Positions 1 to 60,497 of a stretch of 64,000 bases of DNA are shown one piece after another. The notes under the pieces were generated by a model, which was given only the letters and a program-made list of their open reading frames with translations, was not told the DNA's origin and searched no databases. Origin of the DNA: Blastocladiella emersonii ATCC 22665. Its lineage: Eukaryota; Fungi; Blastocladiomycota. Numbering within the stretch: the stretch's first letter is position 1; each line of letters starts with the position of its first letter. Both the position numbers and the translations under genes were made by a program. Where the stretch lies: contig JANHCV010000002.1 of NCBI GenBank assembly GCA_025594325.1, forward strand, positions 496,001 through 560,000, given 5' to 3'.

Positions 1-1389
1 CGATCGACGTCTCTGCCACATCCATTGCAATCGACGATCTTTCCACTCTCGAAGAGTGCCGTTGGGTCGGCGGAGGCAAGCTTGTACCGAGCGCCGACCT
101 CACCGCAGACGAACTTTTCCGCGACTCGGTGCTTCCTGGGATCGCCGCACGCTTCAAGACGCGCGAGGAGCTTTCCGACATGGTCGAGAAGTTGGTCGAA
201 AGCGCCAAGCAATGCCACGCCGAGGTGAACGACATTCTTCGCCACTACGAGCGCCTCCACGGTGCTCGTGAGCTCGCTTTGCTCATGGAGGTACGTATAT
301 CGAGGCCGTGCTACACGTGGTGCTCGACTCTGATACCAAGACTCGGCCCGAGCGGATTGCGGACCAGCGGCTTCGGGCCGCCGTTGTTGCACATCGCCGG
401 TTTGGTCTGCTCCCGCCTCTGTTTTACCCAGAGGGCTCGGACGAATTCTACCTCGACGTCGCCGACGCTCTTTTTTGCGCCATTTACGACACCGCCGAGC
501 GCATCCTCCCAGCGTACTTCGAAATGCTCGACCATAACCTTCTGCAATACTTCATTCCCAAGTTCGAGGACGAGGTTCGCCAAAGCTTTATCAACGGTAC
601 CACAACTCTGGCGGCTCAGCTCACGTCGAGGAGCGGGTTATTGTGGAGGACATGAAGAAGATGCTCCTCAGGGCAACCACAAACCAGCGGATTCGTGACC
701 TTACTCAGCTTCTCAAGCAGCCCCTTGACAAAATTCGCCCGTTGCAAATGGTTGCCGTCATGCCCGAGCTCGTCCGCGATTACGTCAAACTCGGCGCCCT
801 ACCGCCCGACTATCGCTATCCCCCACTCATTCCAGACATCGAGGTTGTCAGCCGTGTGATTACTCTCAAATTCACCGCGTTCCACAACCTTTTCGTTGCC
901 GGCCCGAATCCAATGCTCTCTGCCAATTTTTCATCTCCTCTTCCCCACCCAACGGACGCGCTCGAGGCGCTTATTGGAGGCAAGGGCAAAGCACCCGCAG
1001 CCATTGGTGCAATCAAGTCGCGCGACGTGGAGCGCGTCGAGGCGTGGCTCCGCGCAGGAGTCACGCATGGACTCGAGGTGTGGGACGCGATGCTCCGCGT
1101 CATGAACCATTTTGTGAAACCCGAGCACCTGTGGACGGTAGAGCCGGCCGATCAGGCGGGTGCAACCACGACTCGCCGCCGTCGCTGGTATGCGGGACTG
1201 ATTGTCGTGGTCGACGACAAGTTTCGCATCTGCGGATACGAGGGCGGGGTGCAGCTGAGCGCCAGAGAATACCAGCTCTCGGCTGTGGAGATGAAGTCGC
1301 TCGTTGCCCGAATCGACGAGTGGCGCGTGCACCAGGACCAGCTTGCGCAGCAAATGCAATCGCTGTCGCTTGGGTCGGGGCGCCGCTAG
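1..1389 (+). pseudogene. Unknown family, A-type copy A1; 5' end lies outside the window; two frameshifts
   Basis: Three successive frames (open from base 3, then ORFs 308..655 and 643..1389) align end to end with the intact paralog at 24684..26213 (LTADELFRDSVLPG vs LTADEFFRDTVLPG; GAIKSRDVERVEAWL vs GAIKSRDVQQVEDWL). Frameshifts near 291-300 and at 614-623. Confidence 0.8.
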
Positions 1390-1813
1390 CGACGATCTCC
1401 GTTTGGCGCTCTCACGGCGCATCGATAGCCGCGCTGCCTGACCCGCAGCGCCGAAAGTCTTGAGTGTGCGGGAGCGGCGGGGTCGTTGAGCTCGCTCGTT
1501 GATGATTCGTTTCGTTTGCGTCCAAGATTCGCCTCATCACCACGTTTCTCGCCTGGATGCGTTAGCCTGCCGCTTTTTGTTCTGCATCAATACCGATCAT
1601 TTTTGTGATATGTCATCTCTTGTTCCCATGCAATCGGTTCTCCAAACGGTTCATTCGCGCGGATAAGCCACTCTCACCTATCAAATCCTCACGTCTCGCG
1701 TAAGCTTTTGGGAGTAATTTCCGAACCGTAACGGAGAGGGACTGCGAAAATCATGTCGCGGCTTGATGACAGTCGGTCGAGGCAGGTGTAAACGCGCGAC
1801 TGCTCGCACATCC

Positions 1814-1850
1814 GAGACGCGACGGGAAATCATGTGAGACTCAGGTGATG
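1814..1850 (+). promoter_or_regulatory. Conserved upstream block of B-type genes: GAGACGCG-N8-TCATGTGA followed by TCAGGTGA
   Basis: Nearly identical to the reverse complement of 24321..24357, which lies upstream of the paralogous B2 gene. Confidence 0.7.
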
Positions 1851-1978
1851 TGAGCCACACCTCGTTTCCACCCGCTGCCCGCGCCCATCCCCACGCCCTC
1901 AGCTTCAGCTAACCATCGCCAAGAGCCTAGACTCTCTCTGGCATCGTCCCACTCCATGCAACGCACCAAACGAATCCC

Positions 1979-3763
1979 ATGAAACACCGTCGAACCCGCC
2001 CCCGCCAAGACAACAGGCCGCCGGCCGACCAAGGCGACATCGGCCCTCCGCCCGAGCTGCTTGGCGAAAACGTCGGCCCCGCTCCCAACGAGTACTCGTG
2101 TGCCGGAACGGGCGCCATGGCAATCCACACGCTTCCGGCTTCCGAGTTCTTTCGCACGAAACTGGTTGCTGGCCTTGACTTCCACCGGAATCTGCGCATC
2201 AAGAGCGTCCAGACGAGGCTGTCCAGTTTTCTGAACGGCTCAACCCGGTTCCACCTCGACGTGAAACGCTTCTTTGCGCGATACGAGCAGTTGTTCGGCA
2301 CCCGCGAGCTTGCACTCTTGCTCGAGTCGCAGGAAAAGACGGTCATGCTGTTCCGCGCCATGTGCGACCGTCGCGGGTACCTCCGCGATCCCGACATGGT
2401 CACCGACCTCCGTATCCGCGAGGCGCTTGCCACCTACCAGGGCTCATCGAAAGGCAACGCTGTCGCATGGTCCCCGGGCTCCGAGGTGTACTACCGCGAG
2501 CTTGGAGCTGAACTTTGCTCTGGCATCATCGATGCTGCGGAGCGCGATCTCGACGCGTTCCTGAACATGCTCGCCGACGAGCTGACCGACGACTTTGTGG
2601 CGCAGCGCGACTACGGCTATCCCCCGGGCAATGTTCGAGGCCGTGCTGTGCTGAGCGCGACTTTGGCTGCTCGGCGCGAAAGCGAATACGAACGCACGGC
2701 ATTCGACCAGATGACGTGGCACTTTCGCGGCGCGGTCGACGCAGAACTCGCGGGTCTGCTTGGCCACCCGGCCGACTTTAGCCACCCGGTTCGGCTGTTT
2801 GCCGTCCTCCCGAAGCTCATGGCGCGGTACGTCGCACGGGGGATCGTTCATCCGAAGTACCAGCCTCCCACGATCGTTCACTCGGCCGAGTCGGTCAATC
2901 CCGTCCTGCGCGTCTCGTTTGAGACCTTCTGCCGCTTGTACATCGAAGGCGAGCCACCGCTTCCCGCTCTTCCTCCCGCCTTGGGGGTGCCCACCAAGTC
3001 GATCGACGCTCTCATCGGAACCAAGACGAACCCGCCCGAGGCCATTGAGACCATCACCCCGCGCGACGTAGAGCAGGTTGAAGCGTGGCTGCAAAACGGC
3101 GTCGATCGCGGACTCGCGGCGTGGGATACGATGCTTTCGATCATGTACCACTACGTCAAGCCCCAGCACCTTTGGAAGGAGCAGACGATCCTCATCAACG
3201 GCCAACTCGCGACGCGCAAGCTCCGCTGGTTCGCGGGCTACATTGCGATGCCCGACCGGAAGACGGTCCAGATCTACTCGTACGAGGGCGGCGTGCGGCC
3301 GTGTTCGGGGGATCCGGACCTGTCGCCGTACGAGCTGCTGGCTCTGCGCGCCCGCGTCGACGAGTGGTACGCGCACCGCGGCCAGCTCGGCGGTCCAGTC
3401 CCGCGCGACGTGTACGAGTACGCGACCGCCACGATCACCGACTTTGACCCTCGCGCGCACGAGGACGAGGGCGATTACGAGGTTGACTACGACGACTCGT
3501 ACGGCGACGAGGACGACCAGCCCATCAGCGACGAGGAACCAGGCGCCGCGGCGGCCGAGCGCGTGACCAAGGGCGAGGACGCCACCAGCAGTGCCAGTGT
3601 CACCGTCCCCGAGCCCAGGCGCATCCTCGACGATGCCTTCGACGACGTCCAACCACTGGCGGAGAGGATGGGCGGGCTGTCCGTTGAGTCTGGAGAGCCA
3701 GTGCCAGCGGGTCCTGCGTCTCCTCCCGCGTACTCGATTCCGTGGCTCGATTCGGACGAGTAG
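1979..3763 (+). CDS. Unknown family, B-type copy B1 (594 aa, intronless, acidic C-terminal tail)
   Basis: Intact ORF with strong similarity to 22369..24240 (RKLRWFAGYI...VQIYSYEGGVRP...YELLALRARVDEW) and weaker similarity to the A-type copies. Confidence 0.85.
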   Translation: MKHRRTRPRQDNRPPADQGDIGPPPELLGENVGPAPNEYSCAGTGAMAIHTLPASEFFRTKLVAGLDFHRNLRIKSVQTRLSSFLNGSTRFHLDVKRFFARYEQLFGTRELALLLESQEKTVMLFRAMCDRRGYLRDPDMVTDLRIREALATYQGSSKGNAVAWSPGSEVYYRELGAELCSGIIDAAERDLDAFLNMLADELTDDFVAQRDYGYPPGNVRGRAVLSATLAARRESEYERTAFDQMTWHFRGAVDAELAGLLGHPADFSHPVRLFAVLPKLMARYVARGIVHPKYQPPTIVHSAESVNPVLRVSFETFCRLYIEGEPPLPALPPALGVPTKSIDALIGTKTNPPEAIETITPRDVEQVEAWLQNGVDRGLAAWDTMLSIMYHYVKPQHLWKEQTILINGQLATRKLRWFAGYIAMPDRKTVQIYSYEGGVRPCSGDPDLSPYELLALRARVDEWYAHRGQLGGPVPRDVYEYATATITDFDPRAHEDEGDYEVDYDDSYGDEDDQPISDEEPGAAAAERVTKGEDATSSASVTVPEPRRILDDAFDDVQPLAERMGGLSVESGEPVPAGPASPPAYSIPWLDSDE

Positions 3764-3834
3764 TTGCAGCGCGTGTGAGGCGCGAGAATATAGAGTGCCT
3801 TTTTGTGACCGTTTCAGCCAACGCCTCAGCGTTT

Positions 3835-3858
3835 GAGACGCGTCGCGCTATCATGTGA
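3835..3858 (+). promoter_or_regulatory. Composite element GAGACGCG-N8-TCATGTGA
   Basis: Same motif and spacing as at 1814, 22269, 24334, 26332, 28018, 31606 and 55263; about 320 bp upstream of the ATG at 4180. Confidence 0.6.
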
Positions 3859-10309: not shown

Positions 10310-10371
10310 CGCGCCAGGGGGAGCGAGGTTGGGCAGGCTGTTATTATGATACACACAAAAATGGATGGAAT

Positions 10372-15397: not shown

Positions 15398-18300
15398 ATG
15401 GCCGCCGCCGTCGACACCAAGCCGGCCGACGCGGCCAAGTCGGTCGACTCGCTCCTGGCGCTGTACACGACGGGGACCCGCGTGTGGGTGCCCGACGACG
15501 TCGAGGGGTGGCTCGGCGCCACGGTCTCGTCGCTGTCCCGCACGGGTTCTGGGAGTTCGCCCAACGATGCCGTCACGGTGACGGTCCTCACGGACCGCGG
15601 CAAGGAGATCAAGGTCGCCACGACGGTCGCCAAGATCGCGTCGGCCAAGGACCGCGACCGCGAGGAGCTCCCGCCGCTCCGGAACCCGCCAATGCTCGAG
15701 GGGATCGAGGATCTCACGAATCTGTCGTACCTGCACGAGCCCGCTGGTGCGTTCGTTCTGTCCTCGAAGCGTGCGAGAGCGCGATTGCTAACCGGGCCGC
15801 CGTGTAGTCCTGCACAACATCCGCACGCGGTACTCGCAGCACAACATCTACACGTACTCGGGCATCGTGCTCATTGCCATGAACCCGTTCCAGCGCGTCC
15901 AGCTGTACACGCCCGACGTGGTCCGCGCCTACTCGGGCAAGCGCCGCGGCGAGCTCGAGCCCCACCTGTTCGCCGTCGCCGAGGACGCGTTCCGCGGCAT
16001 GATCCGCGACAAGAAGAATCAGTCCATCATCGTCTCGGGCGAGTCCGGCGCCGGGAAAACCGTCTCGGCCAAGTACATCATGCGCTATTTCGCGACCGCC
16101 GACGCGTCCGACTCGGGCAGCGCTGGCGCCGAGTTTGATGGCGGCGCCCTCATGTCGCCGACCGTCCTCGCGTCCAGTGCGGACGCGAACGGCATGTCGG
16201 AGGTCGAGACCCAGGTCCTCGGTACGCTGCTGCTCGCCTCGCTGTGCGCTCGCGCCGCGCGCAACTGAGCTGACACATCCCGCGCCCGCATAGCCACGAA
16301 CCCCATCATGGAATCGTTCGGCAACGCCAAGACGACGCGCAACGACAACTCGTCCCGGTTCGGCAAGTACATTGAGTTGCTGTTCGACGGGCAGTCCAAG
16401 ATCATCGGCGCGCGCGTGCGCACCTACCTGCTCGAGCGGTCGCGCGTCGTGTACCAGCCCGAGACCGAGCGCAACTACCACGTCTTCTACCAGCTCGTCG
16501 CCGGCGCCCCCGCCGCCGAGCGCAAGGAGCTCGGCCTGCAGCCGCACTCGTACTTCAACTACCTCAACCAGGGTGGTGGGACCGGCACCGTCCCCGGCGT
16601 CGACGACGCCCAGGAGTTTGACCTCACCCAGCGCGCCCTGTCGACGATTGGCGTCTCGGTGTCGGTCCAGTGGAAGATCTTCCGGCTCCTCGCGGCCATC
16701 CTCCACCTCGGTAACGTCCAGATCCAGAACCTCCGCAACGACGAGGCGTACATTGCCGAGGACGACGCGGCGCTCATCACGGCGTCCAAGCTGCTCGGCG
16801 TCGCGCCCGGCGAGTTCAAGAAGTGGCTGGTCAAGAAGCAGATCACGACGCGGTTCGAGAAGATCGTGACGGCCGTCAACGCGACGCAGGCGACCACGAC
16901 GCGCGACTCGGTGGCCAAGTTCCTGTACGCGGGCCTGTTCGAGTGGCTCGTCGACAAGACCAACGACTCACTGTGCCCCGAGCACGTCGCCTCGTCGTTC
17001 CAGCGGTTCATTGGCGTGCTCGACATCTACGGGTTCGAGCACTTCCGCAAAAACTCGTTCGAGCAGTTCTGCATCAACTACGCCAACGAGAAGCTCCAGC
17101 AGGAGTTCACCCAGCACGTGTTCAAGCTCGAGCAGGAGGAGTACGTCAAGGAGCAGATCGCGTGGTCGTTTATCGACTTCAATGACAACCAGCCGTGCAT
17201 CGAGCTCATCGAGGGCCGCCTCGGTATCCTCGCCCTCCTCGACGAGGAGTCCCGCCTCCCCTCCGGCGCCGACAAGTCGCTCGTCGAGAAGCTCTACACC
17301 AACTTTGACAAGAAGCACAAGTTCTTCTCCAAGCCCCGCTTCTCCAACAACTCGTTCATCGTCCACCATTTCGCGCACCACGTCGAGTACGACGTCGACG
17401 GGTTCATCGACAAGAACAAGGACACGGTCCCCGACGAGCTCCTCACGCTGTTCAAGGAGGCCCAGTTCGACTTCCTCACCGAGGCCATTGACGCGCACAA
17501 GGTCAACAAGCCGTCCGACGCCGCGGCTGGCGCGAACGGGTCCATGGGCGCGTCCCGCAGCCCGCCCGTCGCCCGCAAGAACGTCAAGCCGACGCTCGGG
17601 TCCGTGTTCAAGCAGTCGCTCGTGCAGCTCATGGAGACCATCAACTCGACCAACGTGTCGTACATCCGGTGCATCAAGTCCAACTCGGAGAAGAAGCCGT
17701 TCCACTTCGAGCCGCAGATGGTGCTCAGCCAGCTGCGCGCGTGCGGTGTCCTCGAGACCATCCGCATCTCGACGGCGGGGTACCCGGGCCGATGGTCGTT
17801 CGACGAGTTTGTCGAGCGGTACTACCTCCTCCTGCACTCGTCCGAGTGGAACGGGTTCAAGGACATCCGCGGCCTGTGCAGCCTGCTCCTCACCCGCACG
17901 CTGCCCGACCAGGACAAGTACCAGATGGGCCTGACCAAGATCTTCTTCCGCGCGGGGCAGCTCGCGTACCTCGAGAAGCTCCGCGCCGCGCGCCTCAACG
18001 CGTGCGTCATCATGGTCCAGAAGAACATCAAGTGCATGGTCGCCCGCGAGCGGTACCTCGCCCTGCGCCGCGCCGCGGTGCTCCTCCAGGCGCGCGTCCG
18101 CGGCCGCCAGGCACGGAAGGCCGCGCAGGCGATCCGCGAGGCCCGCGCCGCCACCGTCATCCAGACCGCGTTCCGCCGCTGGCTCGCGGTCCGCGAGTAC
18201 GACCGCACCCGCGCCGCCGTCGTCACGGTCCAGTGCGCGTGGCGCTCGTTCGTCGCGCGCCGCACGCTCCGCCGGCTCCGCGAGGAGAAGGCCGCGCTCG

Positions 18301-20744
18301 CGATCCAGGCCGCGTGGCGCGGCTACCTCGCGCGCCGCGAGTACCACGCCGCCGTCAAGCGCGTCGTCCTCGCCCAGTCGTGCATCCGCCGGTACCTCGC
18401 CAAGAAGGAGCTCAAGCAGCTCAAGATGGAGGCGCGGTCCGTCAACCACTTCCGCGAGATCTCGTACAAGCTCGAGAACAAGGTCGTCGAGCTCACGCAG
18501 TCGCTCGACACCAAGGAGAAGATGGTCAAGCAGCTCAACGACACGGTGCGCGCCCTCGAGGCCCAGGTCAAGTCGTGGAAGGACAAGTGGGAGGCCGGCA
18601 ACGCCGCCCAGCAGAAACTCGCCGACCAGCTCGCCGACGCCGGCGCGTCCACCCGCGAGATCGAGGCCCTCCAGGCCCAGATCAAGGGCCTCACCTCGCA
18701 GCTCAACGGCGCCAACGACATGGTTAAGGCCAAGGACGCCGAGCTCGCTACCGCCAACGAGGCCCTCGCCAAGGTCCGCGACGAGGCCGCGAAACGGTCC
18801 CGCGAACGGTCGGCCTCGGTCGGCCCGCCGCCCATCGCTACCTCGCCCGCGCCGTCGTCGCCGCTCCCGCCCGTCCCCGCGATCCCCGCCGCCATCCAGA
18901 CCGGCGCCATCGCACCCGCCGCCGCGACAACGGCCGGCTCCTCGCCGCCGGGTTCCGCCGGCACCAGCGGCGTCGTGTCCCCGCAGGCGACGCCGTACTC
19001 GCCGCGGCCCGCCAAGCACATGACGCAGCAGGAGCTCCTGATCCTCGAGTCGACGCAGATCAACGTGCTGCGGCAGGAGATTGCGCAGCTCAAGCAGCAG
19101 CTCGACGCCGAAAAGGAGCGCCACAAGTCGCTCGCCGAGGCCCGCCAGCGCCGGCCCTCGGTCGACACGGTCCAGACCGATATCGTGTGGCGCCAGGTCG
19201 CGCCTATCGGCCCCGACTCGGGCCACGCCGACGAGCTCGAGTCGGCGGCGTCCTCGCCCGCGCGCCGCCCGCTCGGCCCCGATTTCGGCGATACGAGCGG
19301 CGGTGCGGCCCGCGCGATGCGCAAGATGCGCCGGTACTCGTCGGCCGAGGTCTGGAACGACGCCATGAAGCAGCGCGTGTCCGTCGACCCGAACGCGCTG
19401 CTCAACGGGCTCGCGTCGCCCGGCGGGATGTCGTCGAATGGTGGCGCCAACGCGCGCGAGCCGTCGATTGCCGGCAGCGTCAACGGCGCCGCCAACAACC
19501 GCGCCATGTCCCCGCCGCGCACCGTCGAGGAGGCGCTCATGGAGCAGGAGCACACGTTCTCGCTGCTGCAGGACCCGAAGCTCGAGGCCGAGGTGGTCGA
19601 CGGGCTGGTGCGCAACCTCGTGGTGCCCAAGCAGGCGACGCAGGACTGCTCGCGGCGCCAGGTCGTGTTCCCCGCACACGTGATCGGGCTGTACGCGATC
19701 AAGATGTGGCAGCACGGCATGAACAGCAACATGTCCGGGTTCCTGCGCAACGTCGCCCAGGCGGTCGAGGACCGCGCCACCTACTCCAACTACGACGACG
19801 AGACGGTCGTGTTCTGGCTGTCGAACCTGCTCGAGATCGACAGCATCCTCAAGTCGGCGAGCGCATCGGCATCGGCGGCGGGTGCCGCAGCCGCGGCGCA
19901 GCGGCGCACGTCCATCTACATGGAGGGCGAGCGGATCCTCAACAAGGCGCGCACCGAGCTCGACACCGTGTTCACGGGCATCTACTTCCAGTGGCTGCGC
20001 ATCGTCAAGAAGCGCATCACCAAGTTCATCATCCCCTGCGTCATCGAGAACCAGTCGCTGCCCGGGTTCGTGTCCAAGGACTCGGCGTCGCTGTTCAAGA
20101 AGTTTGTCTCGACGCAGCAGTCCTACACGATCGAGCATCTCCTCGACGCCGTGTCAGGGGTCTGGCGCGTCACGAAGTACTACTACATGGACGACCAGGT
20201 GATCCGCACGTCCATGTCGGAGCTGTTCAAGACGATCGGCGTCACGGCCTTCAACCACCTGATCATGCGCAAGAACTTTGCCACGTGGAAGCGCGGCATG
20301 CAGATCCAGTACAACGTGTCGCGGCTGTCCGAGTGGTGCTCGCAGCACTCCCTGTCCGAGGCGGCGCTGCACCTCGAGCGGCTCATGCAGGCGGCGAAAC
20401 TCCTGCAGCTCAACAAGGCCACCCCCGCCAACATCGAGCTGTACATCGAGGACCTCTTCGACGTGTGCTTCCTGCTCTCGCCCACGCAGATCTCCAAGCT
20501 CATGTCCATCTACACGGTCGCCGACTTCGAGAACCCGATCTCGCCCGAGATCCTCCGCGCCGTGGCCTCGCGATCCGTGTCCAACGACAAGAACGACATG
20601 CTCCTCCTCGAGGCCACCAACGACAGCGACGTGTCGTGGTACGCGCGCCCCGAACCCCGAAAGCTCCTCGGCGTCGAAAAGTACCTCCCGCAGGACCTCG
20701 AGATGGAGATGCCCCGCGTCGTGCTCCTGTTCAAGTTCGCGTAG
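15398..20744 (+). CDS. myo2: Class V myosin (introns 15747-15807, 16222-16293)
   Basis: P-loop [23 protein letters not shown], six IQ motifs, coiled coil and DIL cargo domain ([17 protein letters not shown]). Confidence 0.97.
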
Positions 20745-20986
20745 GCGTGGGGAGGCCCCGCGAGGGAGGGGCAAGTAGGTTTTGGGCTTTGATTGCAACA
20801 GTTTTAACTATAGACGAGTGAATGATGCAGTTCTCCTCCTTGTGTGCGAGTGGTTGAGCGGGATCGAGGGAGGAGAGTCGGCGTGGGCGCACACAGGGGC
20901 GTACATCGCGGCAGCGCTTGAGCGTTTCAAGACGCGTCGCGCGCTGCGCCACGAGTGAGCTCTCCCCGTTTCAAACGAAACTTACC

Positions 20987-21292
20987 ATGGAAACAAATGC
21001 ACTTAGCGAGACTAGCCGCATTAGGCTGTGCGAGTTGCCGACCGAAGTCCTTGGCGTTGTTATCGCGCAGCTCGCCCAGTTCGGACTGCTCTCGGTCTGG
21101 CTCGATCCGACGCTCGACGCTAAGCGCAACGGCATACATGCACTCTACAAGCCGAATCTGCGCACCCACCATCTCGATGCGTCGCGGCTGCGAGTTGAAT
21201 CGATTTGCCCGAGATTTCGTTTCTTGATAGGTCTAGGGTGTGAAGGCCGGGCGGCAGAACTCGGACAATCAGGTCCAGCTCGGTTCCATTGA
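20987..21292 (+). pseudogene. Probable N-terminal fragment of an F-box-like gene
   Basis: METN start and LCELPTEVLGVVIAQL resemble the N-termini at 55530, 58084 and 62846; its 3' part overlaps the opposite-strand LRR gene. Confidence 0.4.
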
Positions 21293-22186
21293 GATCAAAT
21301 CCGCGCAATTTGAAGGTTCGAAGCTGCGCCGGGAGTCCGCGCAGTAGCAACGCGAGTGAAGCCGGTGGCATCCTGCTGTACGCGATGGTAAGCTTCTCAA
21401 GCAGAGGAGGCCACGTGAATTTGGAATTTGGACAGCCGTGCGCTCGCAACGTCGTCCTTGAACCACGTCGCGTCGACAAAGAGCATGGCCGGCGTCACCG
21501 GAAGTCGGAGAGCTCTGAGTCGCGGGACATCGAGCGTGCAGTCGACAAATTTGAGTTTGGTAAGAGCCTGGTTCGGGCTGGCCATGGCACGGTTCAGAGC
21601 GTGGATACCGTTCATGGTGATCACGACCTTGTCGAGCTTCAAGGAGCTCAAATCGCCGTCGGCGAGAGCCTGAAGCTCGGCGGGCGGCTAGACGGGCGTA
21701 GGCAAGGATCAGTCGTCAGGATGCAAGGACGACGGCTATGAATTTTCGCACGTGGTCCTCGTCGTTCAAGTTGAGATCCCTGGGCACAAGCCCCAGTGGG
21801 ACGAGGTAAGTCACGTCCAGCACGTCGATGACGTTCGGCGGAAGGTCCCGCCCGCGAAACCACTCGAGAACTGCAAGGTTTCTCGGCAAGGCAGCAGCTG
21901 TCAGCCCACTCAGCGTGACCGCAATCGACAGGCCGAGCTCGAGTCGCCGTTCAAGCACATCGACGCGACCAGCAGCACAAGCTGCATCGACAGAAAACTT
22001 GGGCGAGCGATCGAGAATGGCGCGTTGAACGCCGGGAGCGTCGTCGTGGCGCAGGACGCGGGCATAGTGCAAAATCGAGTCGTCGTCAAGCGCCATGTGC
22101 AAGTAGACGGCGCGGACAAGAATGTTCTCGAGAATGTGCGGGACACTGGTCCACGATAGTTGCGCCATGTTACATATGTTTGTCAT
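21120..22186 (-). pseudogene. Ankyrin-like plus RNI-type LRR gene, frameshifted and apparently 3'-truncated (intron 21688-21751)
   Basis: VDAACAAGRVDVLE and NLAVLEWF ankyrin-like motifs; LRRs (LRTFKLRGFDL, LHTLDLSRNEISG); frameshift from a 7 bp duplication at 21418-21431. Confidence 0.65.
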
Positions 22187-22268
22187 GGGGGTTGTGGTGG
22201 TGCTATGGGAGGAGTGGGGCGGCGACGGCAAGCACACCGGAACGAGTTGCGCCCCGTGTCGCCCCCGA

Positions 22269-22292
22269 TCAGCTGATTTCGCAACGCGTCTC
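22269..22292 (-). promoter_or_regulatory. Composite element GAGACGCG-N8-TCAGCTGA
   Basis: About 85 bp upstream of the LRR gene ATG at 22186, in the gene's orientation. Confidence 0.6.
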
Positions 22293-22368
22293 AAAATGTC
22301 TCACGCCTGCCCATGGTTGACGTGGAGGTAAATAGCATGAGCAAGGGTATTTGTAGTGCACTCATAGG

Positions 22369-24240
22369 CTACCAACCGCGGTTACTCGGGATATGGTACA
22401 CGGGTGGTTCCGCAGGAGGCGCTGGTTCGGGCTCCTCGACCTCGGCCAATCGCATGCCTGTTGTCGTCGCGGGCAGCTGAATGGAGGCGACAACCTTGCC
22501 GGCTTCGTCCTTGGGCTCCGTTACGGCAGCGAGAGGGACAGCGACAGCGTGGCCAGGTTTCTCGCCGCTGCTCACGCGCGGAGGCATCACGGCACATGGA
22601 TACTCGTCGTCCCTGGCCTCGTCATCATCGCTGGAACCGTCAAAGTCGACCCCGCAGTCTTCCTCGCCACCATACGAGTAAGCGTACGAGTCGTCGATAG
22701 TCGCGGTCGCGTAGTCGTACACGTCGCGCGAGACCGGGCCGCCTCCGTGTAGGGACATGGCGCCGAACTGGTGGGCAAGCGGGCCAGCGCGGTGCAGGTG
22801 CCACTCGTCGATGCGGGCGCGCAGCGCCCGCAGCTCGTACGAAGAAAGGTCCGAGAAGCCCGCGCTCGGCCGCACGCCGCCCTCGTACGAGTAAATCTGG
22901 ACCGTCTTTCGGTTGACGGCCGAGATATAGCCCGCGAACCAGCGGATCTTGCGCGTCTCAAGCCGCCCGTTAACGACAATCGCCTGGTCCTTCCACAGGT
23001 GGTTCGGATGGACAAAGTGGTACATGACCGAAAGCATCGCGTCCCACGACGCAAGACCGCGCGCGACGCCGTCGCGCAACCACGCCTCGACCCGTTCCAC
23101 GTCCTGCGGCGTAATAGACTCGATGGCCGCGGGCGGCGCGGTTTTGGTCCCGATGAGAGCGCCAATCGACTTGGTGGGTGGGTTCGCCGCGGGAGGAAGC
23201 GCGGGAACCGGCGGCCGGCCCTCGACAAACATGCTGCGGAACGCCTCAAACGAGACGCGGACGACGGGCTTGACCGACTCGGCAGACGTGATGATTGAGG
23301 GGCAAGTATAGTTGGGCGCGATCACGTTGCGCTCGGCGTAGCGCGTCACAAGCTTTGGAAGAGTAGCAAAGAGTCGAAGCGAGGAATCCATGTCGTTCGG
23401 GTTATCAAGCAGGGCAGCGAGATCGGCATCAACCACGCCGCGGAAGTGCCGGGCAAGCCTGTCAAACGCAGCGCGCTCGGTATTGCGCCGCGCAAAAAGT
23501 GTCGTGCTAAGCGCGTAGCGGGCGTGAGCGTTGCCCGGGGGACAGGCATAGTCGCGCTGAGCAACAAAGTCGTCGGTCAACTCGTCGGCGAGAATGTTCA
23601 GGAACGCGTCCAGATCGCGCTCGACAGCCTCGAGAATAGCGGCACGCAAGTCGACACCAAGCTCGCGGTAGTACACCTCGGCGCCCTGCGGGTGGTTGAC
23701 GGCGCCGCCCTTCTTAGGTCGGTAGTACGTGGCGACAGCCTCCCGGACACGAAGGTCGGTAACGCCGTCGGGGTTGCGCAAGTACTGGCGGCGGTCGGAC
23801 ACGGCGCGGTACACCATGGCAGTCAATTGAGGCGACTCGAGCAGAAGCGCAAGCTCGCGGGTGCCGTGCAGCTCCTCGTAACGGATGAAGACGCGCGTCG
23901 CTTCGAGGTGGCACCGGCTCGACCCAGCATTGAGTTTGTGCAGCTTAGGCGTGACGTTCTTGCGGTAGAGGCTGCGGTGAAAGGCAAGACCCGGCAGCTT
24001 ATCGAAGCGGAAGAAATCGGAAGCCGGAAGCGTGTGCACGGTCATGGTCCCCGTGCCGGCGCACAAGTACTCGTTGGGAGCGGGGCCGACCTTGTCGCCG
24101 AGAAGTTCGGGCGGCGGGCCGAACACGCCGCCGACATCGGGCGGCGGGGACCGATGGCGATGGTAGCCGCCGCGGCGACCTCGGAAATTGCCTCGGCCGC
24201 CTCTCCATTGGAAGTGATTCATGGGTTCGTTGCGTTGCAT
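22369..24240 (-). CDS. Unknown family, B-type copy B2 (intronless)
   Basis: Intact ORF from ATG 24240 (MQRNEPMNHFQWRGGRG); collinear paralog of 1979..3763. Confidence 0.85.
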   Translation of the reverse strand: MQRNEPMNHFQWRGGRGNFRGRRGGYHRHRSPPPDVGGVFGPPPELLGDKVGPAPNEYLCAGTGTMTVHTLPASDFFRFDKLPGLAFHRSLYRKNVTPKLHKLNAGSSRCHLEATRVFIRYEELHGTRELALLLESPQLTAMVYRAVSDRRQYLRNPDGVTDLRVREAVATYYRPKKGGAVNHPQGAEVYYRELGVDLRAAILEAVERDLDAFLNILADELTDDFVAQRDYACPPGNAHARYALSTTLFARRNTERAAFDRLARHFRGVVDADLAALLDNPNDMDSSLRLFATLPKLVTRYAERNVIAPNYTCPSIITSAESVKPVVRVSFEAFRSMFVEGRPPVPALPPAANPPTKSIGALIGTKTAPPAAIESITPQDVERVEAWLRDGVARGLASWDAMLSVMYHFVHPNHLWKDQAIVVNGRLETRKIRWFAGYISAVNRKTVQIYSYEGGVRPSAGFSDLSSYELRALRARIDEWHLHRAGPLAHQFGAMSLHGGGPVSRDVYDYATATIDDSYAYSYGGEEDCGVDFDGSSDDDEARDDEYPCAVMPPRVSSGEKPGHAVAVPLAAVTEPKDEAGKVVASIQLPATTTGMRLAEVEEPEPAPPAEPPVYHIPSNRGW

Positions 24241-24320
24241 GGTAAGGGAGGGAGCTAGTGAGAGGGTGGATCGGTGACGGCGGGAGCGACGCTCAAAACG
24301 AGGCACGGCGGTGCGGCTTA

Positions 24321-24357
24321 CATCACCTGATTCTCACATGATTTCCTGTCGCGTCTC
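24321..24357 (-). promoter_or_regulatory. Conserved upstream block of B2 (GAGACGCG-N8-TCATGTGA...TCAGGTGA)
   Basis: Reverse complement matches 1814..1850. Confidence 0.7.
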
Positions 24358-24683
24358 CAATGTGTCAGCCGTCTCGCGCGTGTTTGCCCAGTTCTTGACC
24401 GAGAGTCGTGCAGTCAACCCCTACGACGTCAGCGAGTGCGGCTGAGCGAAAACCCACGCCGCTTAGCTGAGCCGTCGATGCGGAAGCGCGTCAGTCAGCG
24501 TTCTCACGGATACGGTGACGAGACAAAGGTGGAAGAGATACTGATGTATAAAATGGAGAAATTGCTCGCTCAAACTGAGGGCGAGGCACGAAACAAAACA
24601 AAGCCTCACACATGAGGCAACTTGACCTTGGAACGCGACGCGACGCACGCCGAGCATGCAGCCTGAATCAGAGAGCCCGAAGT

Positions 24684-26213: not shown

Positions 26214-26331
26214 GTTCGCTTGTTGCTCAGAGGAGACAGAGGCGGCGGGGACGAGTGAACTCGCGAGTGCAACGGTGAGCTGGACAGCCCCTGGACGCGA
26301 GAGTCTAAGCCGGGCGCGCCACACGCGGTTG

Positions 26332-26355
26332 TCACATGTTTTCTCGACGCGTCTC
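26332..26355 (-). promoter_or_regulatory. Composite element GAGACGCG-N8-ACATGTGA
   Basis: About 120 bp upstream of the A2 ATG, in the gene's orientation. Confidence 0.55.
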
Positions 26356-26628
26356 ACCTCGTTCTCACCTCGCGCAAGGCGATTCACGCCGAACTCGAAA
26401 TGCCGGTTGAGTTAAACACTACTGCGCCCGGACTTGTGCCCAAGTGTCTCCGCCTTCTTCAAAATGACCTTTCGATTGAAGCGTGAGGACCGCGCGTTCG
26501 CCTGATTTCACTGGTCAGTCCAGTCCCACTCGCTCACCGTTGTTGGGAAAGAACAAATGACATAGAACATGAATATTGCATTATTGAACAATAATACTAC
26601 GATCCACCAGACCCGTGCCCCGGCTGCG

Positions 26629-27495: not shown

Positions 27496-28017
27496 GGTGT
27501 GCGGGCGGGTGCTTACTTTCCATGCTCGGGAACGATGGCGCTTTATTGCCTGACTTGCAATCCCCCGTCGAGTTGACTGGGACTCATCACCTTGGACAGA
27601 CAAAAGAAATTTGCGGGACAGTTTTTCTGGGATTCATTGAAGCCTTTTATTGACAAACCGTGGACAGACGTCCCGTTAATTGACAAGATGAGGACATACT
27701 CCTCTCTCGATCGTTAATATAAACGGGAAAGTCTTGGCGGCTGTATCTTTTGCGAACTCGACATTGATATGCTCGGTCCGCAGGCGCTCACGGAGCTCCA
27801 AATTGCCGCGAGACGCGTGATGAAATCAATTATATTCTTAAACGCCGTGGAAAATGAAGTGACTTGGCGCGTCGGACTCGCGGTCCATGGCCTCGCCTTT
27901 CGGCTCGGTTGGCATGAACGCCTCAACCGCGGACGTGGGAGCTCCGCGTTAAAACCCAGTTTGGCGCGTGTTAGTGGACTCGTCTTGGTTGCGAAACGAG
28001 GACTCGCTCGAGGGCGC

Positions 28018-52649: not shown

Positions 52650-55053
52650 ATGACCGACGCGACGCAAAAGTTCATCACCAAGCTCTCGGCCGCCATCGAG
52701 GCCGAGCGGCTCGCCGAGGTCGAGGAGACCGAGGCCCTGCTCAAGAGTACGCCGCCGCGTCCCTGATCCGCGTCACTCCGCCCCCTGACGCTCTCGCCGC
52801 CGTACCGTAGAGTACTCGCCCGCCCAGGTCCAGAAGGCCGGCCTCGGCCTCATCAATCTCAAGATCGGCGCGACGCGGACCGGGCTCGGCGGGAAATGGT
52901 GCGCCGCGCGCGCCGCGCGCGCCTCGCCTCCGCCGACTCTCGCTGACGCCGTACCCGTGCTAGCCTTGTGGACCTCGAGCCTGCGACGCCGGGCGTCGAC
53001 GCGCTCCCGCCGCACAAGCTGCGCACCGGCGACATTGTCGCGCTCGAGAACCACAGCTCGTCCGACCGCCCCACCTCCGCGAAACCCGCGGACGGCGGCA
53101 GCGGTAAGGCGGGCAGCGCGACCAGCGGCGTCGTGTACCGCGTCACCGAGGCGAAAATCACGCTCGTTCTCGATGACGATCCGTCGGACGAGCTCAGCGA
53201 GAAGCTGCGCATGTACGCTTCACCCGTCGCAGCTCCACCATGCCCTCGGAACTGACATCTCGTGTAGTATCCGCCTCGCCAACGAGATCACGTACAAGCG
53301 GCTGCAGGCGACGCTGCGCGACCTGACGGACGCCGTCGACGGCAAGCACCCGGCCGCGCAACGGTCGTCGCTCCCGCGTGTCCTGCTCGGGCTCGGGGCG
53401 CCGTCGTTTGACGAGTCGAGCACGAAGCCGCTCAAGCTGTTCAACCCGGACCTCAACGCGAGCCAGAAGGAGGCGGTCCGATTCGCGCTCACGGCGTCGG
53501 ATGTCGCACTGATCCACGGACCTGTGCGCTCGAACTCACTGCGTCTCCTCGCGCGACGTACTGACCCCGAGAACACTTTTAGCCCGGCACTGGTAAGACC
53601 CAGACCCTGATCGAGATCGTGCGCCAGCTCGTCGCGCGCGGCGAAAAGGTCCTGTTCTGCGGGCCCTCCAACATCTCGGTCGACAACGTCGTCGAGCGGC
53701 TCGCGCCCACCAAGCTCCCCGTCCTGCGCATCGGCCACCCGGCGCGCGTCCTGCCCTCGGTCCTCGCCCACTGCCTCGACGTCCGCGTCCGCACCTGCGA
53801 CGAGGGCCAGATCGTCGCCGACGTCGTCCGCGATATCGACACCAAGCTCGCCGGCGTCCGCAAGACCCGCAGCCGCGTCGAGCGGCGTGCGATTTATGCG
53901 GACGTCAAGCTCCTGCGCAAGGAGCAGCGCGCGCGCGAGGCCAACGTTGTCGCGAACTTGTTGACGCAGGCCAAGGTCGTGCTCACGACGCTTAACGGCG
54001 CGGGCAGCAGGAAGCTCGGCAAGTACGACTTTGACACGGTGATTATCGACGAGTGCGCGCAGGCGCTCGGTACGCTCTCAACTCCGTCATCTTGTTGCAA
54101 AGCCGCGCTCATCCCGCGCCGAGTGTAGAGCCCGAGTGCTGGACCGCGCTGCTCAAGGGCCGCCGCGCGATCCTGGCCGGCGACCATCTGCAGCTCCCGC
54201 CGACCATCAAGGCGTCGACGGGCACGACTGCGGGCGTGCTCGCGACGACGCTGTTCGAGCGGCTCATGCAGCGACACGGCGACGCCGTCGCGCGGTTGCT
54301 TTCGGTGCAGTACCGCATGCACGCGGACATCATGGGCTACTCGAGCGCCGCACTGTACGACGGCAAGCTCGAAGCGCACGACACGGTAGCCGCCCACGTC
54401 CTGCCCGACCTGCCGCACCTCACGGACACGGAAGACACGCGCGCGACGCTCGTCCTCATCGACACGGCCGGGTGCGACCTGCTCGAGACGCGCGGCGACG
54501 CGGACGGCGCGAACCCGCTCGCCGCCGACTCGAAATGCAACGAGGGCGAGGCCGACCTCGTCGTCGCGCACGTCCGCACGCTCGTCGAGGCCGGCCTACC
54601 GCCGCGCGACGTCGTCGTCCTCACGCCGTACAATGCGCAGGTCGCGCTCATCAAGGACTGCCTGCGCGCCACCGCGGCTGCGGGCGACCTGCCCGCCGCA
54701 GTCGTCGGGTCGACCGAGGAGCTCGCGATCGAGGTCGGGTCGATTGACGGCATGCAGGGCCGCGAAAAGGAGGCGGTCGTCATCTCGCTCGTCCGCAGCA
54801 ACGACGCGCGCGAGGTCGGGTTCCTCGCGGAGCGCCGCCGGCTCAATGTTGCGATCACCCGCGCCAGGCGGCATTTGTGTGTCATCTGCGACAGTACGTT
54901 ATCTCTGGGTGCGTTGTCAGTGGGTTGATGGGTGCTAACGGACCTCGTTCGTCGGGGGTGCGTGTAGGCGAGACGGTGTCGACCAACGAGTTTTGCCGCG
55001 GCCTCGTCGAGTATATGTCCGAGCACGGCGACCTGCGATACCCGGGTTACTGA
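52650..55053 (+). CDS. hcs1: SF1 Upf1-like DNA/RNA helicase Hcs1/IGHMBP2; about seven introns
   Basis: LNASQKEAV, IHGP|PGTGKT, PSNISVDN, IIDECAQA, LAGDHLQLPP, QYRM, SIDGMQGREKE, RRLNVAITRA. Confidence 0.93.
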
Positions 55054-55262
55054 ACGCGATGTTCCCGATCTTCTTAAACCTTGAATAATTGATTCGATCT
55101 CGCTCTATGCCTTGTGCAGTATCGTTGACCTGGATGTGGCCGCTGCCGACCGCGGCAGGACCATAAAAGAACCCGCGTGATGGCTTCGCGCCGACAGCGG
55201 TGACCACGAGTGACGTCAATATCATCGACTGCGGCATCAAGGGCGAGAGGAGGGACCGACGA

Positions 55263-55283
55263 GCGCGTCAGATCGTCACGTGC
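55263..55283 (+). promoter_or_regulatory. Composite element GCGCG-N8-TCACGTG
   Basis: Same spacing; about 250 bp upstream of ATG 55530. Confidence 0.5.
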
Positions 55284-55529
55284 GGATGAGGAACGCGAAA
55301 CGGCTGGGTTCGATAGAGCCAACGCCTCTAACGAGTCCGAAAACGAGGGCAAACACCGGCATAAAATACTTAGCCTGATCTTTTCTCTGGTCGTAGTGGA
55401 TAAAAACAGGCGAGAAGACCGGAAGCCACACGCAAAGGAACTGCCGTGGCGGCAGCGACTCCCACGCGCCGGCCGCCTTCTCGCCGCTGCCGCGCTCGTG
55501 CCGTGCTTACCCACCCCGCGCATACAACC

Positions 55530-57896
55530 ATGAATCAAACAATGGAACTTCATGCAATGGACTCGGGCGACCCTTCGCTTGCTCGGCTGCCCGCGGAACT
55601 GGTCAGCGCTATGCTTCAGCTGGCGGTGCCGCGTTCAGCGATCGCGGCCGCTTCGGCTTCCCTTCGCGCAATCCTTCTCGTCGATGAGCCTGTTCGCATT
55701 GCCTGGACCGTCAGAGTTGTGAAGAAGCTCTGCAGACGTTCACGTTCCGCGCGAGGCCTTCGTTCCGACCCGTTGGCTCGACTCCTGCTTCCGAAATTTG
55801 GTCACTCCAACAGGTACGCCAAGTCGGAGCTCACGTCATACGAGCGCATTCCGGCACCGACGATACTCCTCTTAAATATTGTTGCGTACATGTGCCGTCG
55901 GGTCCGCCAGATCAGCGGCGTCAGCACAGCTCAAAGTTCTTGAGCAAGCGATTGAGACCGAAATCTTTCCTTCCTGGCCATTCAATACGTCGGCGCCCCC
56001 CTCGTACCCTCGTTCGCATGCTTTTTTGCGGCGGCCCTGTTCGGATGGACCGAATTCCTCCATCGCGCACTTGATATCGTTGCCGCGACTGTACCGCAGC
56101 TGCTTAATGTGTCAGTGTCCCTTGGCCACGTCGCAACGTTCATTCGATCTCACGAGCTTCCGTTGAAGTTACTTGACGAGTCCGAAGGTCTGTCCTCCTA
56201 TTCTGTGCGTCTCGCGGACATTCTAGCGTATTTGGCAGTCTCGTCGTGGAAGTACTCAACCTTCCAGCTCCTGATCGGCGAGCCCCGCTACGCGGTGGGC
56301 ACGGCAGCGTTGCTTGCACAGCTTTGCGCGCCCGTTCCGTCGGACTTTGTACTCCAAATTTGCGGAACCCGAACGAGCAGGTCTTGGAGCCGAGCATATA
56401 TTTGCTTGGATTTTTGAGCGCTGCTCAGAAATGCCGGACCGGGTGCAGCAGACGTATGTATGCTCCGCCGCCGAAATGGGCCACACGGTCTTCATCCCGC
56501 TACTCGCCCGTTTTCCCGACCGGGTCAAGCTCGCTCTCCCGTTCCGCAACGACATTAATGATGCCTACATCGGCCTTCAGTGGCTGCCTGACGTTGAGGA
56601 ATTTGACGACGACAGTGTGTATTTCCTGGGCACCTTTGTTTGGTCGTGGTCCTGCGAGGAAACCTTCACAGCTGAAGCTTTTGACCTGCTGGATTCGCAC
56701 AACCTCATTGCCCGCTGTACTCGGAGCTGCCTCGTTTCATGGTATTTCACGCGTGGTCGGCTTGGTTTCACTGAGCGACTTCGCATGCGGTACACGCCCG
56801 AGCAGTGGCAGCGTCTGCTCTTGGATTGTGCGTTTCAATGCTTCCGTTCTAATGCTGACGAGACTGTGCATCATTCTAACCTAACTAGCCCAATCGATGT
56901 AGCGCACCGTCATGGTTGCGGTAGTTACCAGTACGGGTGTTGGAGACGTGGACGTGTTTGCGAAGCTGTGCTTCGATACGCGCTCTCCCCATCACCTACC
57001 GCTGGGAGCAGCTTCGGTCCTCTGAGCCTGGACGACTTTGCACGCGAGTTTTGCTTTGGTTCGCTCGGAGCAAACGAGCCACCCGCCATCACCTGGCAGT
57101 GCGACTTCCTCTTCACCGAGACGGGGTCCTTGGCCATCCCCACCGAGCTGCTTCCCTCGCCAGACTCTTGCGATCAGGACGAGCGCGTTGTTTGGGAAGT
57201 CGCCGTCGACTTGACGTGGCTGCTCGTGTCGGCCTTCTTGGTTCCCGAATGCAATTCAAAGCTCAAGCGCCTCATCAAGGAGTCGAATACGGCGCCCATC
57301 CTGCTCCGTGCCGTCGCTCGGGCGCTTTTCCCGCCTGCTGGCGTGGCCATCGCGCCGAAAGGGCTGCACTACCTTTGCGGCTCCGTTGCGAAAGTTTGCG
57401 GCGATTGCCCGATCATGGCGCAAGCAGTCTGGCGCGACCTCGTCAGCGCGCTCTTCCGGCGCTGCAGCCGTGAAGACTACCCATCGCTCTTTCCATCAGT
57501 CGGCAACCTGTGGTCGCGACTGTGGGGGCTACTGACAAGCGGCCCGAGCAAGTGTGCCGCCGCACTCACAAGCAACGAGTCGAGATGTGACTGCGTTGGA
57601 GCTGCTCAATCCTTTGTGCACATGCTCGTCATGAGCGACCCGCAGCGCGCGATCGCCACGCTTTGGGCCGAGTTTGCCGCGGGCGGCCTGCCGCTGGGTG
57701 TGCTGCGTCTGCTCCCCACCGCGAAGCTGGACGATCTGGTTGGTCCCGAGGCGTTGAGCGGGCTCTTCAGGACACTTATCGCTGGTGCTGCTTTGGCGAA
57801 CGACCAGTCCTGGGTCCCTGGGTCAAGCTCGAGTTCGCGCGGATCGCGCCAAAGGCGTCCGCACTTACGAGTAACGGGATGCGTGTTCGTTCGTGA
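55530..57896 (+). pseudogene. F-box-like N-terminus, unknown family D, copy D1; several frameshifts; in-frame intron 56828-56902
   Basis: LARLPAELVSAMLQL N-terminus; collinear with 60498..61969 (WQCDFLF...GSLAIP.ELLPSP; AVDLTWLL.SAFL; IKESNTAP.LLRA); frameshifts near 55920-55960, at 56396-56401 and at 57809-57824. Confidence 0.7.
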
Positions 57897-57977
57897 AAAG
57901 TCTCTTATTCATATTATGTTCTGTACCATTCGACCGATGATCGACAGAATGGAAGCGGCGAAGAAGAAAAAGCGAAA

Positions 57978-58000
57978 ACGCGTTGCGCCACATCAGCTGA
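57978..58000 (+). promoter_or_regulatory. Composite element ACGCGTTGCGCCACATCAGCTGA (N10 variant)
   Basis: Near-identical copies at 62076 and 62720, each 45-105 bp upstream of a family-C ATG. Confidence 0.65.
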
Positions 58001-58083
58001 TGAGCGGCGAAGTGCGCTACCCGAGTTGGTTCTCACGCTTTGTGCGCGATCCATCCGCTCGCTCCGCACCACGCTGATCACCG

Positions 58084-60446
58084 ATGGAGCAAGCGAATGA
58101 AATGTCCGACAACACTTCCAGCAATGTCACGACGCTGGGCGCGCCCGCGCTCCCGTCGCTTCCAACCGAGGTCTTGACCATCCTGCTGCAGCTCGTCCGC
58201 CCTCGCACCACCTTCTGCACTGCTTCACGCGAGCTCTTCGCTGTCTCACGGTCGGAGCGCGTCAAGTTTCTTTGACTCGACCGACGGATTGCACGCGCGC
58301 GCAAGGTCTATTTGGATGAAGAAGAGGGAGAGAGCAACTGGAGCTTCGAACCGAACAGTATACGACGGATGCGGGCGTGGTGCTTCTTGTTGGCTCCCTC
58401 GAGAAGCGCACTTGCGTGATCCCTGGCAGCCCCGACTACCACCGGGTCGTCTCGCTCTTCACCGTCTTGACCGAGCGGCTCATTGGTCTCGCAGCCCCGG
58501 TCATCAGCCGATTTGGCGGTAATCTTGCGCCCCTTGCCGCCAAGGTCAAATCGTCGGCCCACAAGTGTGGCATGCCTCGCAGCATTCGCAAGGACCCTAT
58601 CTTCGCAGTCCTGCAAACTCTCGTTCTCGCCGTGGTATGCCTCGATCCGCCGAATATGGTCCGCGTTCTCTCAGCCGCGCACACCCGGCTGCGCGACCTC
58701 TTCCACGTTCGCATGTCGCTCCGCCGCTGGGTCCAGGTGGCCGATCACCTTCGACACTACGTTTGGGTTCATCGCCGCAACCGGAACGACCAAGTTCCGT
58801 TCTGTAACGTCCGCCTTGTCGAATTCTTGGCGGTTGCCGCTGTTTTCACGTGGAGTCTTCCTACTTGGAGCGCCTTTCGCAATTCCTTCCCCTTCCTTGA
58901 CATAGACTGGGCTATCGGAGCTTTAAACAGTGTCGCTCTCCGGGTCCCTCTGCTTGAAATGAGCCAGGACACGGAGCGGGACCGTCACATGCTCGGTTGG
59001 CTCATGCGCGACTGCTGGACGAATGAGACCCTCAAATATGGAAGGGCACTTGTCCTCGACCTATACGCCAAGCCTCGATTGCTTCGTTACGCCGCTAAAC
59101 TCGACCCCGACCATGTTGTCCGGGCTATCACTGACGATGATCGCGACCAGCTAGTGGAGGCACTTGATGACCACGATTCCGAATTCACAGTTGATCAGAT
59201 CGAGGCACTCGATGACCTGCAAATGCTTGACAGCACAGCGTGGGATCGTGTCCTCGGTTCCGTGCATTTCGAAGTGGACCAGCTTGGACCGCTCCATCCG
59301 ATTGCTGCCCTCGCGCTGCAGCGGCTCGACGACGGTTACATTGCTGTCTTGGACAACTGTACAATTATTCTCGCGTGTTCACACCGCAAAACAGCATCTG
59401 ACTGATGATCGGTTGACTGTTTAGTCCTGGAGCCCTACCTGCAAGCGGACGACTGGACAGAGTCCCCGCTACAGCCGTTGCTGCGCTTTGCTCGGCGCCA
59501 TTTCGGCGACCGTGGCGTCGACTTTGTCGTTACCGAGCTCCTCAAATTTGTCGCCACATTGCCCCCTGGCACACCCGGGCTTCACTGTGCGCACAATCCT
59601 CCGTGCTTGGAAGCGGTTGTCTGCGGAGCGCTGAAGCTCATCTTTTTGAGTGATATGGACGCGAAACTGTGGGACGTTTTCTGCGCTGTGCACGAGGCGG
59701 TTGCCAAGCACTTTTCGTTTGAGCTTTGCTCCTCACTTGCGTGGGCCCCCGTGGCCATCATGCACGACCCGAAGTTGCGCGACCGCGCGATTGCCTATAT
59801 GCGACAGAACGAGTCCATCAGCTCATTTCTTGGCGTCATGGTCGTGGCCATGGCGCGCAACGACGCTGTCGGCCGGCACACAATTCCCCTAGGCGCACCC
59901 GCTTCAAAAGCCCTGGCCTGCGGTCAATGCGAGCTCTCGCGGCAACATGCGTATATCAACACGATCCGTGCGCTACTGGAGCTCGACGCTGGGATCATCT
60001 CCGAGCTTTCTCCTCGTGTTTTGCGATCGCTTCTTTCAGTCCTTGCCGCCAACGAGGACCTCGCCTCGATTGTCTCCGTCCAGGCAGACGCTCCACCGCT
60101 GCCGAAATGTTCCTCGGGATGCAAGTCGATCTCCGCTCCGTACCTCGAGTTGTTGAAGGCCTTGATTGCCACCAATCTTGCAAACCTGATCGACTCCCTC
60201 ATGAATGAGGTCCGTCCGCCACGTGCGCCGCTTCCAATCTCGTTCTGGCGGGCTGTTCCCGACGACGCCCTCGACGGGGTCAAGAACGCACGCTGGCTTG
60301 CCCGAACTGTTTTTGCCTTCCAGCAGCAGCCCGACGCTCGTGTCCTCGAGGATGAACTTTGGCGTGTTGCACCCAAGACTCTGGAATCCGACGAGTACAA
60401 GAGCGCGCTGTCGGCGCTCAATCGTCGAGCAGTCCGGGATGAGTAG
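58084..60446 (+). pseudogene. F-box-like N-terminus, unknown family C, copy C1; nonsense codon plus frameshift; intron 59359-59424
   Basis: Aligns with 62846..64000; TGA at 58273 where the paralog has TGG (KFL*LDRRI vs NYSWLDRRI); 5 bp duplication at 58347-58356; the intron joins ORFs 58377..59405 and 59478..60446 in frame. Confidence 0.75.
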
Positions 60447-60497
60447 CGGTTCAATTATACCTCTTTATGATTTAACAGCTTGCGTCAATGACATTAT

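Follow-up and report, generated by a model that had tools for sequence, protein, structure and literature searches.

Short tandem duplications among the lesions of accessory-family genes in Blastocladiella emersonii, a probable outcome of ordinary pseudogene decay

Here we analyzed a 64,000-nucleotide (nt) stretch of the Blastocladiella emersonii genome (the window; C11:496001-560000, where C11 is contig JANHCV010000002.1, in a genome of 32.65 Mb and 21 contigs), in which genes of several accessory families are interrupted by frameshifts that an earlier reading of the letters had attributed to tandem duplications of 4-8 nt. These lesions very probably represent ordinary pseudogene decay in lineage-specific families, short tandem duplications being one expected class of lesion. 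Judged against paralogs, two tandem duplications among them count as certain (7 and 8 nt), one as probable (5 nt) and one as doubtful (5 nt), and a mutational or switching system that generates them is not supported. The underlying phenomenon, that short insertions arise mostly as tandem duplications in many organisms, is already known, and the finding has little significance per se: redundant family members appear to be decaying by a textbook mutational route.

Lesions in the A1, LRR, D1 and C1 genes

The families involved are an orphan family A, an LRR family and the orphan families C and D. The original prediction described these as four unrelated families, a description that does not hold for C and D, which have an F-box-like N-terminal motif in common and are thus partly related. 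The five repeats on which it was built are all present as letters (614-623, 21418-21431, 56396-56401, 57809-57824 and 58347-58356; sites 1 to 5 below). As causes of frameshifts they fared unequally: comparison with paralogs upheld the duplications at 21418 and 57809, left that at 58347 probable and that at 614 about even, and removed that at 56396, where conserved residues are encoded. The lesions and candidate lesions are as follows, in window coordinates.

291-300, + strand: loss of 4 nt from A1, near 297, by comparison with both paralogs (DNA alignment columns 327-330; net -4 with four queries)
614-623, + strand: GCTCA x2 in the interval that contains the second frameshift of A1; ambiguous
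21417-21432, gene on the - strand: AATTTGG x2 as read on the + strand, an exact tandem duplication of 7 nt that frameshifts a truncated LRR copy
55941-55943 and 55953-55955, + strand: two in-frame TGA codons in D1, with homology to the paralogs on contig C17 in the same frame on both sides
56367-56376, + strand: true +1 frameshift of D1, from intact C17 paralogs (net +1 with four queries)
56396-56401, + strand: ATATAT, no lesion; codes H-I-F in the correct frame, aligned to N-I-F of paralog q1462
57809-57824, + strand: exact 8-nt tandem duplication, CCTGGGTC x2, which frameshifts the last ~25 codons of D1
58273-58275, + strand: TGA in C1 where C3 has Trp (C1/C3 comparison)
58347-58356, + strand: CGAAC x2 at the shift of C1 from frame 1 to frame 0; candidate 5-nt tandem duplication

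The LRR copy offers the clearest case. Two paralogs, L012 and L015, run continuously over site 2 in one frame (...LSKF-TWPP..., the hyphen marking the site), and the LRR pieces upstream and downstream of the site both align to one same codon of these two paralogs, the window copy being 7 nt longer than the paralog and exactly in register. On this alignment AATTTGG x2 is a solid example of a real frame-breaking tandem duplication that is derived relative to the paralogs. The repeat lies in a periodic run of 16 nt at 21417-21432 (GA-ATTTG-GA-ATTTG-GA), which provides 2 nt of flanking microhomology, a weak arm. The LRR paralog matches LRR_6 in Pfam, and alignment of the window copy is limited to residues 1-166 of the 386-residue paralogs, by which measure this copy is a fragment regardless of the duplication.

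D1 matches D2 in frame 1 as far as 57810, and homology continues in frame 0 after the doublet at site 4, just 3' of which D1 matches 12 of the 16 residues of the D2 tail ELELARVAPKASALSS. The shift is thereby bounded to ~24 nt, and because an exact 8-mer doublet would fall in such an interval by chance with a probability of only ~0.001, CCTGGGTC x2 is likewise a solid, real frame-breaking tandem duplication, derived by comparison with D2. This doublet has no flanking microhomology. The net difference from D2 is +5, and collapse leaves D1 shorter than D2 by one codon, the register being inexact.

Further upstream in this gene, the intact D paralogs on contig C17, which have ~490 residues, align to frame 0 as far as 56366 and to frame 1 from 56377, and AGLGAEHIFAWIF pairs with ADRGAANIFPWIL in the D1-paralog alignment. 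ATATAT at site 3 was accordingly rejected as a frameshift, given that it encodes conserved residues and that the shift is placed at 56367-56376. Two further positions had been left as unexplained frameshifts; that at 291-300 is indeed a frameshift and corresponds to the 4-nt deletion in A1, whereas that at 55920-55960 consists of the two in-frame TGA codons, with the frame unchanged. When the D1 open reading frame (ORF) was used as a query against the protein collection, it returned no match, not even the D1 ORF itself.

The C1 frame change was located by tblastn at 58347-58350. Collapsed to one unit, the C1 doublet reads W-S-F-E-Q-Y-T-T against W-R-A-E-K-Y-T-T in C3, and is in register with it. 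The C3 sequence at this position is CGAGCCGAAA, and MAFFT produced an alternative in which the whole C1 doublet is aligned to CGAGCCGAAA, the doublet being ancestral, with a 5-nt insertion, AGCTT, placed just upstream. When the cost of the alignment is set against how improbable an exact doublet would be at that place, the rough odds are ~10 to 1 in favor of a duplication, and a 5-nt tandem duplication at site 5 is therefore probable but unproven. The more remote C paralogs do not help here, the region being a variable loop, and a C fragment between D2 and C3 leaves it uncovered; the doublet has no microhomology arm. The claim that removing one unit restores register with the paralog holds at 58347 against C3, subject to the MAFFT alternative, holds at 57809 apart from one codon and has no lesion to act on at 56396.

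The A1 frameshift at site 1 is real and amounts to net +2 relative to both paralogs. Collapse of GCTCA x2 leaves A1 one codon short, the ~10 surrounding codons are poorly conserved, and a 5-mer doublet would occur in the interval by chance in ~5% of cases. A duplication of 5 nt with loss of 3 nt, and an insertion of just 2 nt beside a chance doublet, are about equally likely on this alignment; the doublet has no microhomology arm. An intron at 291-296 (GTACGT) was considered and rejected, as the paralogs align straight through with the 4-nt deletion, and short introns were rejected as the cause of the other frameshifts, those sites involving 5-8 nt.

All of these genes are disabled in more than one way. 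In D1 the 8-nt duplication is accompanied by a +1 shift and two TGA codons; in C1 the +5 change is accompanied by a TGA at the Trp position of C3, and in A1 the +2 change by the -4 deletion. Because each gene has other disabling lesions, with truncation in the case of the LRR copy, none of them can be restored by the collapse of a duplication. The survival of such lesions had been attributed to relaxed selection on copies that are redundant, and this does account for it. Under this explanation, the duplications would persist only through such relaxed selection, and out-of-frame duplications would be purged from working genes. In annotation, pseudogene status is appropriate for A1, the LRR fragment, D1 and C1, and neither a switch nor the trace of a transposon should be read into the apparent pattern.

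Spectrum of insertions and deletions, and doublet frequencies

To describe the lesions of these families as a whole, frameshifts were tallied by hand curation with DNA alignment, and the tally was used qualitatively only. An automated paralog scan had returned 29 junction clusters, many of which recorded a single event reciprocally or were artefacts of antisense or F-box-motif type. The frame-breaking insertions and deletions (indels) were as follows.

A1: -4
A1, site 1: net +2
Upstream A copy: +7, non-tandem
A copy at C11:756915: -1
LRR copy: +7, duplication
D1: +1, and +8 duplication
C1: +5
D paralog at C17:1897527: -10 (four queries)
C11:1483791: -1 (nine queries)
Same families: several further +1 events

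Tandem duplications account for 2-4 of the at least 13 frame-breaking indels, and deletions, single-base insertions and nonsense codons (the last in D1, C1 and D2) stand alongside them, so that the statement that duplications dominate over deletions is not sustained. Among insertions of at least 4 nt, 3-4 of 5 are tandem. In addition, a 2.76-kb paralog pair at 89% identity contains no indels, which argues against a hyperactive indel process.

We then compared the number of exact two-copy repeats (doublets) with Markov shuffles, both in the 64-kb window and in a non-redundant set of 117 kb that comprises the window and paralog loci with mirror copies removed, for which third-order shuffles were used.

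Unit 4: window, 245 observed, 250-273 expected; 117 kb, 420 observed, 481±21 expected
Unit 5: window, 102 observed, 89-103 expected; 117 kb, 144 observed, 172±11 expected
Unit 6: window, 93 observed, 24-34 expected; 117 kb, 124 observed, 54 expected
Unit 7: window, 17 observed, 8-11 expected; 117 kb, 20 observed, 17±5 expected
Unit 8: window, 3 observed, 2.1-3.4 expected; 117 kb, 6 observed, 5.8±2.2 expected
Unit 9: window, 5 observed, about 1 expected; 117 kb, 8 observed, 1.7 expected

No general excess of out-of-frame doublets (4, 5, 7 and 8 nt) over the shuffles was observed in either set, which removes the support for a special mutational system, and enrichment was restricted to the in-frame units of 6 and 9 nt. 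A general process of duplication, followed by filtering on reading frame, would be expected to give this pattern. Within 8-25 nt of any point, a doublet of the frame class needed is found in 10-21% of cases where the shift is +1 and in 4-9% where it is +2. At 19893, an exact doublet of an 8-mer occurs in an intact myosin-like ORF whose GC content at third codon positions (GC3) is ~0.95 in the same frame on both sides; a candidate extra event from an ORF-rescue test, it was rejected and assigned to chance. A second 8-mer candidate from that test, at C11:755948, was rejected because it lies upstream of an A-family start codon. CGCGTCT x2 is present at C11:320749-320762 with no clear ORF break.

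Three observations weigh against ordinary decay as a complete account. First, an exact 38-mer x2 at C11:2719595-2719675 (L041:1995-2075), with 5 nt of microhomology, lies in a long, conserved-looking - strand ORF on this contig, and its collapse in silico extends the 504-codon ORF to 699 codons. Because this duplication breaks a long ORF, duplication lesions are not restricted to accessory families. Second, insertions outnumber deletions by ~9 to 4 in the curated tally, a tiny sample in which shared events or errors of assembly may account for some of the +1 calls, and no conclusion is drawn from the ratio; deletion bias is common in genomes, and an insertion-rich tally would be unusual if it holds here. 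Third, three of the four candidate duplications (sites 1, 4 and 5) have no flanking microhomology and are a poor fit to a microhomology-mediated model.

These observations could be accommodated by a lineage-specific, largely microhomology-independent process that would leave exact duplications of 5-40 nt genome-wide, conserved genes included, together with insertion-biased frameshifts, which we regard as very improbable. The related proposal of an unusually active, lineage-specific process that makes short tandem duplications without microhomology, such as the fill-in of staggered breaks, appears slightly less probable still: it would explain the arm-free candidates, the insertion-rich small tally and the confirmed presence of the exact 38-mer duplication in a gene, yet out-of-frame doublets are not in excess in the 117 kb, the 2.76-kb pair has zero indels, and the 38-mer duplication does carry 5 nt of microhomology. 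Ordinary pseudogene decay, in which short insertions usually arise as tandem duplications by replication slippage, by microhomology-mediated duplication or by staggered-break fill-in with end joining, continues to be the favored explanation, and any of these routes may have produced each individual duplication.

The inverted duplication, remaining explanations and genomic setting

D1, C1 and D2, with all of their lesions, lie in one arm of a near-perfect inverted duplication.

53761-62125: arm holding D1, C1 and D2; mirror copy at C11:561636-570000 (L029:1636-10000)

The arms extend over at least 8365 nt with 1 mismatch, a substitution, and no gaps, and are separated by a 3.5-kb spacer that holds C3. 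The three D1-C1 repeats do not differ between the arms, which gives no hint of switching; this is a weak test, given that gene conversion could homogenize the arms.

The agreement of the arms also bears on whether the duplications are artefacts of assembly or polishing, or one heterozygous allele retained after haplotig purging. The published assembly was built from HiFi reads with haplotig purging and Pilon polishing with 65-nt Illumina reads (PMC9730499), and short-read polishing can miscorrect paralogous regions. Nevertheless, HiFi errors are mainly homopolymer indels rather than exact 7-8 nt copies of complex sequence, the lesions occur in independently broken genes, as real pseudogenes would show, and both palindrome arms agree. 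We therefore consider an artefactual origin to be quite unlikely.

Slightly less likely again is that the duplications are footprints of cut-and-paste transposons, produced by insertion, target-site duplication and later excision. The 8-nt duplication without microhomology has the usual length of a hAT target site, and the genome contains 7 matches to hAT dimerization domains, none of which is on this contig. The unit lengths vary (5, 7 and 8 nt, and 38 nt elsewhere), so that no single transposon family fits, and no transposon remnant was seen near any of the sites. The duplicated copies abut exactly, with no altered or leftover bases between them, whereas hAT and P excision typically leaves altered or extra bases, and CCTGGGTC is a misfit to the hAT target consensus. 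With lengths of 5, 5, 7 and 8 nt and exact junctions, excision footprints, which the original prediction had listed among the possible general causes, do not serve as one, although for the single 8-nt case such an origin is unlikely but possible.

The last possibility, that the duplications are reversible on/off contingency switches of accessory genes, can be virtually dismissed: two-copy tandem duplications do revert precisely and at high rates in fission yeast (PMC8639346), but here D1, C1, A1 and the LRR copy are otherwise disabled and cannot regain function by collapse, the same D1-C1 states are present in the two inverted arms (1 substitution in 8365 nt), and each site has just two copies and no long hypermutable tract.

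An interstitial telomere-like tract of ~5.5 CCTAAA units, one of them a variant, lies at window 62145-62177, 20 nt past the inner end of the arm. The telomere-like motif published for the species is AAACCT (PMC9730499), and the tract could be the trace of a break that was healed, or of an origin of the palindrome by breakage and fusion. Two other segmental duplications with nearly identical copies were observed on the contig: an inverted pair, C11:824186-829490 and 873020-878324 (L011/L013 and L010/L012), ~43 kb apart with 4 mismatches in 5305 nt, and a direct pair, C11:620311-622210 and 757183-759082 (L004 and L003), 137 kb apart with 1 mismatch in 1900 nt.

More broadly, the window holds clusters of tandemly arrayed, lineage-specific families in lower-GC islands of a very GC-rich genome. 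Overall GC in the accessory-family islands (window 1-2000, 20000-28000 and 54000-64000) is 56-63%, and their GC3 is ~0.6-0.7 in contrast to ~0.95 in the myosin-like core gene (16308-20744). Family C is a large one (at least 93 matches over many contigs), and most of its frames are open over 400-560 codons (local context, window 62633-64000); it gave no Pfam match, despite the F-box-like look of its N-terminal motif. D genes consist of two homologous modules with a short intervening segment (window 56878-56967 and 60928-61060) that contains a stop in the C17 paralogs and a frame change in D2. This segment, in which CTAAC and TAG signals are present, is probably a short intron; bounds of 56828-56902 for the D1 intron were dropped, as paralog homology continues to ~56877. 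Finally, a conserved motif of ~25 nt, GACGCGTCGAGAAAACA(G/T)GTGAC with an ACGCGT core inside, was found in four copies.

L003:1185-1216: motif copy, ~150 nt 5' of an A-family start codon
C11:493503-493533: motif copy
Window 26331-26358, - strand: motif copy
L008:1039-1061: motif copy

This motif is a possible shared promoter element.

Comparison with known systems

A 2007 study by Messer & Arndt reportedly described short insertions arising as tandem duplications, and several known systems can be set beside the lesions described here. Bacterial-type contingency loci also toggle the reading frame through a change in repeats; there, long tracts lie in otherwise intact genes, whereas here two copies lie in multiply broken genes. 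The excision footprints of hAT, P and Mutator elements resemble these lesions in being short direct duplications in a gene, 8 nt matching the hAT target-site duplication, and differ in that the lengths here vary, the junctions are exact and no element is nearby.

Across life, duplications mediated by microhomology are conserved, and coding regions are depleted of them (PMC13167724), a depletion that matches the deficit of 4- and 5-nt doublets observed here. Their arrangement of arm, segment, arm, segment and arm (PMC8639346, PMC13167724) is recognizable at site 2, with a weak arm of 2 nt, and in the 38-mer duplication, with a 5-nt arm, unlike sites 1, 4 and 5, which have no arm. For these, the fill-in of breaks with 3' overhangs, which yields small duplications (PMC8355091), offers a parallel: exact duplications of 5-8 nt without microhomology are the product of staggered-break fill-in with end joining, a route shown in mammalian cells with engineered breaks, in contrast to the present cases, which are known from sequence alone.

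A close counterpart is found in flies and primates, in which 80-90% of short insertions are simple or complex tandem duplications (Tanay & Siggia 2008, PMC2374710). That figure came from neutral genome-wide alignments, unlike the handful of events in fungal pseudogenes considered here. In both settings, the insert is an exact copy of adjoining bases, here absent from the paralogs (exactly so at site 2), and the majority that tandem duplications make up among our insertions of at least 4 nt, 3-4 of 5, agrees with the 80-90% reported there.

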